From contig JALDTO010000215.1 in NCBI GenBank assembly GCA_023515725.1, forward strand, positions 62,001 to 126,000: a DNA stretch of 64,000 nt, read 5' to 3'. Every line of letters begins with the position of its first letter. Positions within the stretch are counted from its first letter, which is position 1. This stretch comes from Amoeboaphelidium protococcarum X5 (lineage: Eukaryota; Fungi; Aphelidiomycota). Below are positions 4,926-8,492 of the stretch, one piece after another. Both the position numbers and the translations under genes were made by a program. Below the pieces are notes generated by a model. It was not told the origin of the DNA. It did not search any database and saw only the letters and a list, made by a program, of their open reading frames with translations.

Positions 4926-6433
4926 ATGTTTGCGGATTCTGAGCTAGTTGGGGTATTCGAGGATGCGGAGAGATAGTAATAACAACAAAGGTAAGCTCAT
5001 GTTGTCGCTCTGATTGTTTCAAATATCATGATTTTATTAGTAACGCGTGTAGTTATGGAATTCAACACTTTGGTATTGATGATTTGATTTCTGGTAATGG
5101 TGGCCAAAGTGGTCAAATGCAGCAAAGTGGCGCTCATTCTGATATCTAGTCTTTAGGACAGTCTCCGTCTATTGGGTAGTAGCCAATGTAGTACGAAGTT
5201 TAGCGCTCGCCGCAGCATGTTTCGCCTCTAAGTCCTCTGTAACTAAACTAAAGTTTGCCTACTGTCAATGAGGATCACACATAGCAGAAGCTGACTATCG
5301 ATACTTCTCTTGCATCTGCAACAAACTTTTAGTAGTCTTTGACTTCTGGACTCCTGTCATCTGCGGCTATATAAAGTGCCAAATTCCAGAGTCCACCTAG
5401 CTGGCGTCGTCGCAATACGTACAACGCTGGCGATAGCGGCCCGCATTTTACGCCAACACAGTAACATGAAACCGTGTACAGTGGAGACAAGAGCCAGATG
5501 ATGAAATTCAGTCTTACTGCAAAGCTGGATAAGGGCTTCTTCCTAGCTGACAATGACTGGACTTGCTATCGTCGCAACTATTTTCAATTATCTGCCGCAT
5601 TTCAGTCATTCGCGTCAAGTGCTGTGGCTGGTGAAAATTCCTCAATGTTTCAGTGCCCTGTTGAGGAGCAGAATGCTGTGATTGTCCAGGGAGGATAAAC
5701 AAAACGCATTTCTTCATTCAAAATTGGAGTATCAAGTCGTGTTGCCGCATCTCAGAAGTCTATTCAGTTGATTTAGCACACTAGCAAACGCGACAAAGGC
5801 CCACAGAAGGTGCCTGGGCCTCGTATCTGTCGATCTGGCGGACAGCTGTTATCTCTATCCCCATTGCACGGTGCATCTGAAGCTATATCGTGTGGAGATG
5901 ATGTGGTGTGCTTCGAGAGAATTCAGTTCAAAAGCTCCACTGCTAACAACGGCAAGAGACGCACTGCTCAACAATACTTTGTTTTGGACATTTGTCTATT
6001 TGCTGAGCTCTAGGATGGCGCAGAAGTGAGAATTGCATCCATCACCTCTGCTCCTTTGATTGTGAGAGGACGTTCACCTGGACATTACGCTGATTAGGGT
6101 AATTACGTGCAGCCAAGCTATGGAAAGTCTCTGATATCCCCTGGCATGCAATCATAGTTTCTGTATGCTAACGCCGACTCTATGTTAACTCAGATGACGC
6201 CGTAGACGCCATTTGTAAATTAGCTGCTGTCATTGCAAGAAATCCCATCTTATCAAAGTCCATCGCCTTCTGGGTTGGTAAGATCATCCTCTTCCAACTC
6301 TGATTTTGACACTTTAATGACTGGTCAGTAGTAATCTCTGTTACCTGTCTCAAATTTTGGATTCTAGTTCAATGTTGACCAATAGCAGTATGACTAGTAA
6401 TTGCAATTGGCCTAACTGAACTCCGTGTTATGA
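4926..6433 (+). CDS. Ndt80/PhoG-family transcription factor; intron 4991-5052
   Basis: WTCYRRNYFQ, LIQHTSKRDKGPQ, FERIQFKSSTANNGKRR, IVRGRSPGHY; Gln-rich flanks written with TAA/TAG/CAA. Confidence 0.93.
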
Positions 6434-6579: not shown

Positions 6580-8231
6580 TCATTTATCGGGCAGTTCAGA
6601 ATTCTAGTACAATGGGTTGAAACTTTCGCTTGATGATGGTTTATAAAGAGGATTGTTCTACATCTAGGTAGCATAGAACTCCTTCTCCCATGTTTTCTAA
6701 AATCTTACCGCAGCTACGTGCCAATACAGAATCCATGCTAGTAGAAGTCCAATAAGAGCGAAGAACGCAACTCCACCAACAACAACGCCCGCGATCTAAG
6801 AACTCTATAAAGGCGGCTGAGGAGGAAATATAGGCATCTTTGCCTCAATGGTGATTGTCGCTGTAGATGAGGATAGACCATCAGAGACCATCCACTTCAG
6901 TTGCTCTTTCCCAACATTAACAGGCCGGTACTCTAGCATACCATCCTTGGCAATAGTAGCATAACCAAACTAAGGCGATGATATCAAAAAGAAGGATAGA
7001 TCAGACAGAGCAGTGTCTCGATCATAAACACTCAACTGAAATGTACTGTTCTCACCAATGTTTGCATTCACCTACTAATCACTAGCTTCAGGTGGGTAAT
7101 AAATTGCATTTACCGAAATTTATGCAAAAGCAACAGTTGAGTTAGCCTGACCGTCATTCATAATGAACTAGAAACTATCTTCACCGTTAAAATCTACATC
7201 TGGAGTATATACAATCTTGGTATTCACAGGAATCCAATTTCCTACAGGTGCAGATATAGATCCAAATGATGGTTTACTCAGAATCATGAACGACACGGTC
7301 GGGTTATAATCAGGATCATAACCTTCCAGGACAAACTAAGCTTCACTATTCTGAGACAGAAGAACAGATGTGTTCAGAGCAATAGGAGCTTGATTGATGG
7401 GCACAATAGAGGTGGTAATTTAGAACGCACTACCACTCCAATGACGTTCCGCGTGGAAGATTGTCATCTCATGAGTCAGATTCTGCAGCAGACCCAGACT
7501 GTCCAGATTAATAGAGCAGGTCAGAGTTGGATGAATAGAGCCCAAGTCGCAACTTGTAAGCTTGCCATCAATAAACACCCATAAATCATCATCACCAGTG
7601 AATGTGAATACTTCACCGCCTCTGTAATAGAATTTGGCATTGATCTCAGTGGTGAACCAGTAATTGTTATTGCGATCAGACTGACTGAACATACTTCTAC
7701 TATTCAAAGCCTCTCGCTGATATCCTAGACCATTCAAAGGGAAGAAAGAGGTGGACTTGAATTGATACAATGCAGCAGACGGATCAATCAGGTCCAACTA
7801 TATAGATAATGGATAAGCAATATTGACACCAGGAACGTCGGTGTAATACTCTTCATGAAGAAACTGGCCAAAATTTGAGATTGCAGCCGAAGTTCTAGCC
7901 TGGGTCACATTGAGTTTAGAGCAGCTGGTGTATATACCAAATTGATCCGGGCTGCGCAATTGGGGAGGTAAGAACTACGGGCGCCCGTTTGCATCCAACT
8001 TATCTTTCAGTAAACCAGTCTGCTAGTAACACCATTAAGCGGGACTCTCCATATCAGGGTTCATTGCACTACATAGAGAACGTCGGTATGTTAAAACATG
8101 TAAAGGGCATATGGACAGTATGAGGCTTACTTAAAGTCGCGAAGAAATCCTTGCAGTGTGATAAACGGTGGCAGATCTGACTATGCGTAGATGGCCGTTC
8201 CAAGCAGCATGACTTGAACCAGTTTGTTCAT
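6580..8231 (-). CDS. Single-pass membrane protein: signal peptide, fibro-slime/PA14 domain, two Ig/cadherin-like repeats, TM helix, double-NPxY tail; intron 8069-8130
   Basis: LRDFNAMNPDME, FFPL, WFTTEINAKF, FTFTGDDDLWVFIDGKL (fibro-slime); VYTPDVDFNGEDSFQFIMNDG repeat; GVVVGG TM; NNPLYKPSSSESFNPLY. Confidence 0.9.
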
Positions 8232-8492
8232 ATTAAATAACATTTAATTCGATATAATAGTGCTGTGGTGATAGTTCTCTAGAGTGGGATAGAAGAGTTG
8301 TTAAGCAAGTGGACAGCTCAATACTGTTGTTCCGCACGGTAACCATGGCAATATTCGGAGTTCTGTGCAGTGTTGCGACATTCGCTCTTTGTAATCCAGG
8401 AACTACCCTACGCTATTTGAAATATTGATAGCAAAGATATTGCAAAGACAATTAAATCCAGTTCAAGACTATATTATTATTCACAATTTCTA

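Follow-up and report, generated by a model that had tools for sequence, protein, structure and literature searches.

Which membrane protein could hold talin at the cell surface of fungi described as lacking integrins? Basal fungi retain talin, vinculin and paxillin without integrins, and the membrane anchor of this machinery, and even its function, have been stated to be unclear (PMC5042518). The question is raised here by a gene within a stretch of 64,000 nucleotides from the aphelid Amoeboaphelidium protococcarum X5 (GenBank assembly GCA_023515725.1, contig JALDTO010000215.1, positions 62,001 to 126,000 of the forward strand), which we call the window and in whose coordinates the features of the gene are given. 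The gene comprises two exons on the minus strand (8243..6580) and, with TAA and TAG read as glutamine, encodes a type I membrane protein of 533 residues, identical to the public protein KAI3632783.1 ('hypothetical protein MIR68_008858 [Amoeboaphelidium protococcarum]', 533 residues; here also P0001).

The cytoplasmic tail of this protein holds two NPxY motifs eight residues apart, in the spacing of integrin beta tails, under an ectodomain of another kind. With moderate confidence, we regard it as an integrin-independent, talin-coupled lectin adhesion receptor of A. protococcarum. Zoosporic fungi keep talin, vinculin and focal-adhesion scaffolds without integrins, and the receptor family described here offers a concrete, testable candidate for the anchor.

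A receptor with a conserved double NPxY tail

From outside to inside, the receptor is made up of a signal peptide, a fibro-slime/PA14 head, two immunoglobulin (Ig)/cadherin-like repeats, a transmembrane (TM) helix with a G-x3-G motif and a tail of 46 residues with NPLY-x8-NPLY. The signal peptide (MLFNMNKLVQVMLLGTAIYA, 8184..8243, minus strand, as are all features of the gene) was read from the sequence and coincides with an N-terminal helix (residues 5-19) in the AlphaFold2 (AF2) model; hydrophobic leaders also begin the homologues. The head (7399..8168, spanning the intron) is assigned to the fibro-slime family by its match to NCBIfam TIGR02148 (85.9 bits against a cut-off of 45, E 1.9e-24); it also matches Pfam PA14 (E about 5e-4) and has the conserved core G-D-D-D-L-W-V-F. 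A search found 4336 relatives of the head, with bacterial fibro-slime proteins in the majority, and a metagenome scan with the PA14 piece returned GC-rich bacterial fibro-slime genes only, all of them without TM helix or tail. Glycan binding, as a lectin module, is the probable role of the head.

The stalk (6847..7395) consists of two bacterial-type Ig/cadherin-like repeats, for which the Pfam scan gave Big_9 over two stretches (E 3.1e-17; 63.7 bits against a cut-off of 23.6), Cadherin_4 (E 1.2e-9; 39 bits against 25.1) and Cadherin_5 (E 6e-8). Both of the first two scores exceed the Pfam cut-offs, which places the protein among Big_9/Cadherin_4 repeat proteins. AF2, run on the family alignment, predicts two beta-sandwich Ig-like domains with a pLDDT above 90; in a Foldseek search the model came closest to the staphylococcal adhesin SraP, at its ligand-binding region with lectin and cadherin-like modules, and next to cadherins.

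Below the stalk, a glycine-rich TM helix (IAGVVVGGVAFFALIGLLLAWILYW, 6721..6795) with the G-x3-G motif was read from the sequence and is likewise rich in glycine in the homologues. It is followed by a membrane-proximal cytoplasmic helix (HVAAVRFQKTWEKEFYATQMQN, 6655..6720) that bears the stripe A-x-[KR]-F-x3-W-x2-E-[FWY] and includes RFQKTWEKEF, by the proximal NPLY (6643..6654; NP[LM][YF] across the family), by the spacer KPSSSESF (6619..6642), whose length of eight residues is invariant in the family, by the distal NPLY (6607..6618), which is invariant in all ten family clusters and is the part docked on talin below, and by the tail end QNSELPDK with its TGA stop (6580..6606), again read from the sequence. 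In the AF2 model, an unbroken helix (residues 460-506) runs from the membrane span to just short of the first NPLY and the NPxY part is unstructured, which is the known arrangement of integrin beta tails. An earlier, sequence-only reading of this DNA had proposed a GxxxG TM helix, the segment RFQKTWEKEF and two NPxY motifs eight residues apart with a Ser-rich spacer on a non-integrin receptor of a fungal relative. All of these elements are present on the minus strand, given glutamine at TAG and TAA; the ectodomain is of the fibro-slime/PA14 and Big_9 type, with no Integrin_beta head detected in protein or genome; and the identity to KAI3632783.1 names the relative as an aphelid, an amoeboid parasite of green algae.

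Homologues were sought by exhaustive HMMER searches, with the head of the diverged second copy of the gene (its homeolog) and then at full length with the public protein. The same full architecture was found in four metagenomic clusters, which are aphelid-like, and in five Blastocladiomycota: Blastocladiella emersonii, Sorochytrium milnesiophthora, a Paraphysoderma sedebokerense-like sequence, Coelomomyces lativittatus and Catenaria anguillulae. The ectodomains of these homologues are only 28-49% identical to that of the aphelid protein; the tails of the ten clusters align without any gap (alignment A1). Across this alignment, Y1 (the Tyr at the end of the TM helix) and W13 are invariant, conservation reaches at least 90% at A6, F9 and E16, and the distal NPLY, the 8-residue spacing and E34 are invariant, the invariant Glu of the spacer standing three residues ahead of the distal Asn. 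The shared layout reads as a G-rich TM helix, Tyr, A-x-[KR]-F-x3-W-x2-E-[FWY], seven residues, NP[LM][YF], eight residues, NPLY and a short end, with NPLF as the proximal motif in the blastoclad members. A search of a 5.8-billion-protein set with the tail region (residues 463-533) returned the query alone, the method being too insensitive for a region of 71 residues. Several carriers of the receptor parasitize algae, mosquitoes, nematodes or tardigrades, and the lectin-type head could be a determinant of host attachment.

Within the 23.6-Mb genome, a degenerate DNA pattern for NPxY-x8-NPxY finds four sites, against none for the reversed control and a chance expectation that we estimate at about 0.2 sites. 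All four are C-terminal ends of type I membrane proteins, namely the receptor, its homeolog and a second gene pair. Between receptor and homeolog, 97 codon differences are synonymous and 10 non-synonymous over the whole gene, and the tail holds 9 synonymous and no non-synonymous differences; where a related strain departs from the window in the TM helix and tail, the six differences listed all fall on third positions and leave the residue unchanged. The codon comparisons indicate purifying selection on the receptor and its tail, and the sequence evidence indicates that the motif pair is not a product of chance.

Relaxing the genome pattern to NPx[YF] brought out a second receptor family, headed by a VWA domain and represented by four further genes per genome copy, three in tandem and one dispersed in each subgenome. 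The dispersed copy lies on the minus strand at G000:C155:146969 (L104:2416-4251), with its homeolog at C155:858745, and the tandem copies lie at G000:C205:679303, 683026 and 689460 (L126, L127), with homeologs at C233:36185, 39853 and 49415. Their ectodomain opens, after a signal peptide, with a VWA domain (VWA_2, E 6.8e-9) that has the D-x-S-x-S motif of a metal ion-dependent adhesion site (MIDAS; here D-A-S-G-S), and continues through an unnamed middle domain to a long mucin stalk rich in Ser/Thr(/Glu); the TM helix follows, and the tail carries NPLY-x8-NPL[YF]. In a profile-profile comparison, the two families align over the double motif alone, and they do so at the same positions from the membrane (22-45 in both). 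Two unrelated heads that carry the same module at the same depth argue for one shared cytoplasmic reader.

Talin as the candidate reader of the tail

Full-length talin is present in two homeologous copies (on C205 and C155), each with FERM_M, an IRS-type F3, Talin_middle and I/LWEQ in order, and vinculin likewise in two (C214 and C213). The talin F3 is about 70% identical to that of mammalian talin-2 over 80 aligned residues and keeps the RRWAA strand, the strand that pairs with integrin tails. Scored genome-wide as an IRS-type phosphotyrosine-binding (PTB) domain, talin F3 is best by far, at 1e-28 against 1e-9 for the next. Binding was modeled with the F3 as two stop-free chains (split at a TAG codon) and a 17-residue piece of the tail (NNPLYKPSSSESFNPLY). 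The tail peptide reached an ipSAE of 0.64 (runs 0.63-0.66), against 0.11 for the best control; among solved complexes, 51 of 78 attain the mark applied to this score, as do 2 of 108 mismatched pairs. The runs share at least 95% of their contacts, with a partner pLDDT of at least 67, and the modeled contacts join the F3 strand LTTLRRWAAA and the C-terminal F3 helix to the peptide SSSESFNPLY, which is the canonical site. The predicted complex lends support to binding of the tail by talin F3. Conservation of the tail in several zoosporic fungi makes the receptor a good candidate for the partner that fungal talin has at the membrane.

As we picture it, the head would grip a glycan on the wall of the algal host or on the substratum, while the NPxY segment would bind the PTB-like F3 of the cell's own talin by beta-strand addition, in the manner of integrin beta and SibA tails. 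The talin rod and its I/LWEQ domain, reinforced by vinculin, would tie the receptor to actin, and the amoeboid zoospore could then pull on the target held by the head, in crawling, host attachment or engulfment.

A number of points weigh against this picture. All support for binding is computational, and the docked peptide of 17 residues is below any length in the calibration, with the F3 modeled as two chains. Solved talin-integrin complexes exist, so the docking result may reflect remembered likeness; and it was the distal motif that docked, from a peptide in which the proximal one lacked the residues ahead of it, so that either motif may be the one that binds talin. The Integrin_b_cyt scores of the tails, at 15-16 bits, lie under the Pfam cut-off of 23.4, and the nearest conserved aromatic residue stands 8 residues before the NPxY in the receptor family, as against 5 in integrin beta3. 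Four other FERM proteins are possible alternative partners, the lectin activity of the head is drawn solely from family membership, and expression support is thin, consisting of five low-depth metatranscriptome contigs.

That the NPxY motifs act mainly as trafficking signals, setting surface levels through endocytosis or recycling by PTB or FERM-like adaptors in the way of the LDL receptor or SNX17 cargo, is in our judgment unlikely. NPxY is long established as a signal for endocytosis and recycling, most family members have an aromatic residue ahead of the distal motif (F/Y/H-NPLY), and sorting reportedly controls how much SibA stands at the cell surface (PMC3279395). Such a role would moreover be compatible with talin binding. 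However, six-frame searches of the genome detected no PID-type PTB and no SNX17_FERM_C domain, a result that does not prove absence, even though the same method recovered FERM, talin, vinculin and IRS domains. In addition, a spacing that never departs from eight residues, a constant depth below the membrane and a conserved proximal helix are features of an integrin-type tail, unlike those of single sorting signals.

A main partner among the FERM proteins other than talin, which would lead to motor coupling or Rho signaling, likewise has a low probability. The genome encodes two MyTH4-FERM proteins, one FERM-SH3-RhoGEF protein and one small FERM protein, at four loci with two copies each. The distal NxxY of integrins is reported to be read by a FERM protein different from talin, kindlin (PMC3488048), and the distal NPLY is the invariant motif of the receptor family. 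On the other hand, a strong IRS-type PTB score was obtained for talin F3 only (1e-28 against 1e-9), the integrin-binding strand is retained there, and docking passed with talin F3, the one FERM domain tried. The second MyTH4-FERM protein (G000:C98:1213965 and C249:235031; L132, L133) has an F3 that scores as an IRS-type PTB at E about 1e-9, and is another possible reader of NPxY tails.

We consider it very improbable that the protein is itself an integrin beta subunit that has diverged strongly, or that it belongs to the Sib proteins of Dictyostelium. A single TM helix with G-x3-G followed by two NPx[YF] motifs eight residues apart is what an integrin beta has, and a profile of the ten tails, searched against 177,635 distinct PDB sequences, gave eight matches at E up to 10, six of which are integrin beta tails, the best among them (beta7, E 0.022; beta2, 0.16; beta1, about 1.3) with NPxY-x8-NPxY aligned residue for residue. 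Integrin_b_cyt (PF08725) is the only Pfam match on the isolated tails of P0001 (E 0.02, 15.0 bits) and P0008 (E 0.008, 16.3 bits), and the better of two on that of P0009 (E 0.09). Yet the Pfam scan of P0001 found neither an Integrin_beta head (PF00362) nor a VWA domain, and the receptor has no PSI domain and no Cys-rich EGF-like stalk, its stalk being formed by the two Big_9/cadherin-like Ig domains. A six-frame genome search for Integrin_beta gave no candidate, by a method that does not prove absence; the same search with Integrin_b_cyt also gave none, which is uninformative for a model of 44 positions, since the tail itself lies in the genome. Of the features that define Sib proteins, the glycine-rich TM helix and the tail with two NPxY motifs are present; the extracellular VWA domain by which the group is defined is absent according to the Pfam scan, and a fibro-slime/PA14 head stands in its place. 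Least credible of all is a chance or lineage-specific, functionless motif pair: short motifs do arise randomly, and the Integrin_b_cyt scores are under cut-off, but the enrichment of four sites over none, the purely synonymous change in the tail and a layout invariant in aphelid and blastoclad homologues despite ectodomain identities of 28-49% all speak against it.

We retain talin coupling as the preferred account of the tail. The sequence-only reading had proposed an integrin-independent, talin/FERM-coupled receptor, and had named as grounds for rejecting it the lack of a FERM/PTB partner in the genome, a tail not conserved in homologues or a purely endocytic role of the motifs. Talin is present at full length in two copies, together with vinculin; the tail is conserved without gaps in ten clusters, from aphelid-like metagenomes and the five Blastocladiomycota; and the docking backed by controls lends computational support to the proposal. 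As to the third ground, a purely endocytic function is conceivable, although the searches for PID and SNX17-type domains detected none and the docking, with its controls, placed the peptide on talin F3. Its suggested search for further TM proteins with NPxY-x8-NPxY tails yielded the homeolog, the second gene pair and the VWA-headed family. We found no publication that links an aphelid or blastoclad receptor of this kind to talin.

Gene model, glutamine codons and genomic setting

Exon 1 (8131..8243), which ends in phase 2, codes for the signal peptide and the first part of the fibro-slime head. Its ATG at 8243 is that of the public model, whose start, MLFNMNKL, matches the exon; a further ATG lies at 8231. 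The intron of 62 nucleotides (8069..8130, GT..AG) is exactly missing from a contig of a related strain (run X11), which has the joined form and two substitutions besides; P0001 reads RDFNAMNPD over the junction, and the intron of the homeolog is 61 nucleotides long. An earlier model with an intron of 179 nucleotides (8130..7952) was ruled out by the joined form of the related strain and was dropped. The intron-free contigs of run X11 ('organism B'), a run of unrecorded library type, stem either from spliced transcripts or from an allele that has no intron. Exon 2 (6580..8068) is coding from 8068 to 6583, with TGA as its stop at 6582..6580. A freshwater metatranscriptome (X14) contributes five small contigs, each of which falls within this exon.

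Under the standard code, many TAG and TAA codons break the minus-strand frame, and with TGA as the sole stop it becomes one long open frame ending at the first TGA. The coding sequence uses 15 TAG and 3 TAA codons for glutamine alongside 10 CAG and 7 CAA, P0001 shows Q at every one of the TAR positions, and glutamine at TAG and TAA has been reported for A. protococcarum (PMC6299283). The window and the related strain trade TAG and CAG at two codons (7798-7800 and 7900-7902; codons 124 and 90 in a 529-residue model, 128 and 94 in the numbering of KAI3632783.1), with CAG for TAG at one and TAG for CAG at the other. This swap between strains is direct, population-level evidence that TAG codes for Gln.

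Each gene examined in this genome is present as two diverged copies, with coding differences that are almost all synonymous. The copies of the receptor (the window gene and C264:1884100-1885800) are about 91% identical in DNA; talin (C205, C155) and vinculin (C214, C213) are paired as well. These duplicates are consistent with two homeologous subgenomes or a hybrid.

Public models of the family vary in completeness. That of the homeolog, KAI3630598.1 (726 residues), appears over-extended at its N-terminus through fusion to an upstream frame. The Paraphysoderma model KAI9137795.1 (408 residues) ends ahead of the TM helix and tail, both of which are present in a 550-residue version from read assembly (P0008), and the models of Blastocladiella britannica (P0017) and Gonapodya prolifera (P0030) end without TM helix or tail and may be truncated. 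The names noted for public homologues are 'hypothetical', 'PA14 domain-containing' or 'fibro-slime domain-containing' protein only.

The convergent neighbor of the receptor gene is a plus-strand frame (window 4943-6430), with its 3' end about 150 nucleotides from the receptor stop. Its RRNYFQ motif recalls DNA-binding domains of the NDT80/PhoG type.

Relation to integrins, Sib proteins and amoeba lectins

Among known systems, integrin beta subunits resemble the receptor in the tail. The spacing NPx[YF]-x8-NPx[YF] is identical (beta1 has NPIY, eight residues and NPKY), and the proximal NPLF of beta2 is that of the blastoclad receptors. In both, the TM helix is prolonged by a membrane-proximal helix that shows a K-F ... 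W pattern, and the first motif comes about 22 residues past the membrane. The receptor differs in that its tail lacks the HDR(R/K)E hinge, its conserved aromatic residue stands 8 and not 5 residues ahead of the first NPxY, and its ectodomain has no beta-I, PSI or EGF domains. Integrin alpha has not been reported from fungi (PMC5042518). Common descent of the two tails is possible and unproven. A bolder scenario, conceivable though doubtful, is that the TM helix and tail form a surviving piece of an ancestral integrin beta, kept after the ectodomain was lost on the way to fungi and re-attached to fibro-slime and MIDAS-bearing VWA heads, and that such receptors anchor the adhesome of talin and vinculin to the membrane in aphelids and zoosporic fungi.

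The Sib proteins (SibA-E) resemble the receptor as a whole, being type I receptors with a glycine-rich, G-x3-G-bearing TM helix and a short tail with two NPxY motifs in an integrin-less host. They differ in having a VWA domain, whereas the receptor, of 533 residues, has a fibro-slime/PA14 head and no VWA, and in belonging to Amoebozoa, the receptor being from Holomycota. SibA is about 1900 residues long. Bacterial-type repeats are said to have been described in its ectodomain by Cornillon et al. in 2006. The VWA-headed family is a closer architectural analogue of Sib than the fibro-slime receptor is. Kang et al., for their part, did not see Sib proteins outside Dictyostelia. SibA binds talin and couples forces in the piconewton range in an organism without integrins (PMC12686525).

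An integrin-like cytoplasmic motif and the use of talin have also been proposed for the Gal/GalNAc lectin of Entamoeba and the mannose-binding protein of Acanthamoeba (PMC12686525). These amoeba lectins share with the receptor the combination of a carbohydrate-binding adhesin and a short integrin-like motif in integrin-less amoeboid parasites, a likeness drawn from their published descriptions; their ectodomain folds are unrelated, and the Acanthamoeba protein has one potential NPXY motif, in contrast to the conserved double-motif module of the receptor. For the head, the known counterparts are the PA14 proteins of Dictyostelium and the bacterial fibro-slime proteins (TIGR02148; Myxococcota and others); the latter, its nearest relatives by sequence, have domains 40-50% identical to it and keep the G-D-D-D-L-W-V-F core. 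In these bacterial proteins the domain is either the last element or is followed by modules of other kinds, and none examined has the Ig-TM-NPxY part.

Set against these systems, talin coupling of the receptor would extend the linkage of non-integrin receptors to actin through talin from Amoebozoa, where SibA exemplifies it, to the fungal side of the tree. The principle is already known from SibA; what is new is a version with a lectin-type head and an integrin-type tail in an aphelid and in blastoclads.

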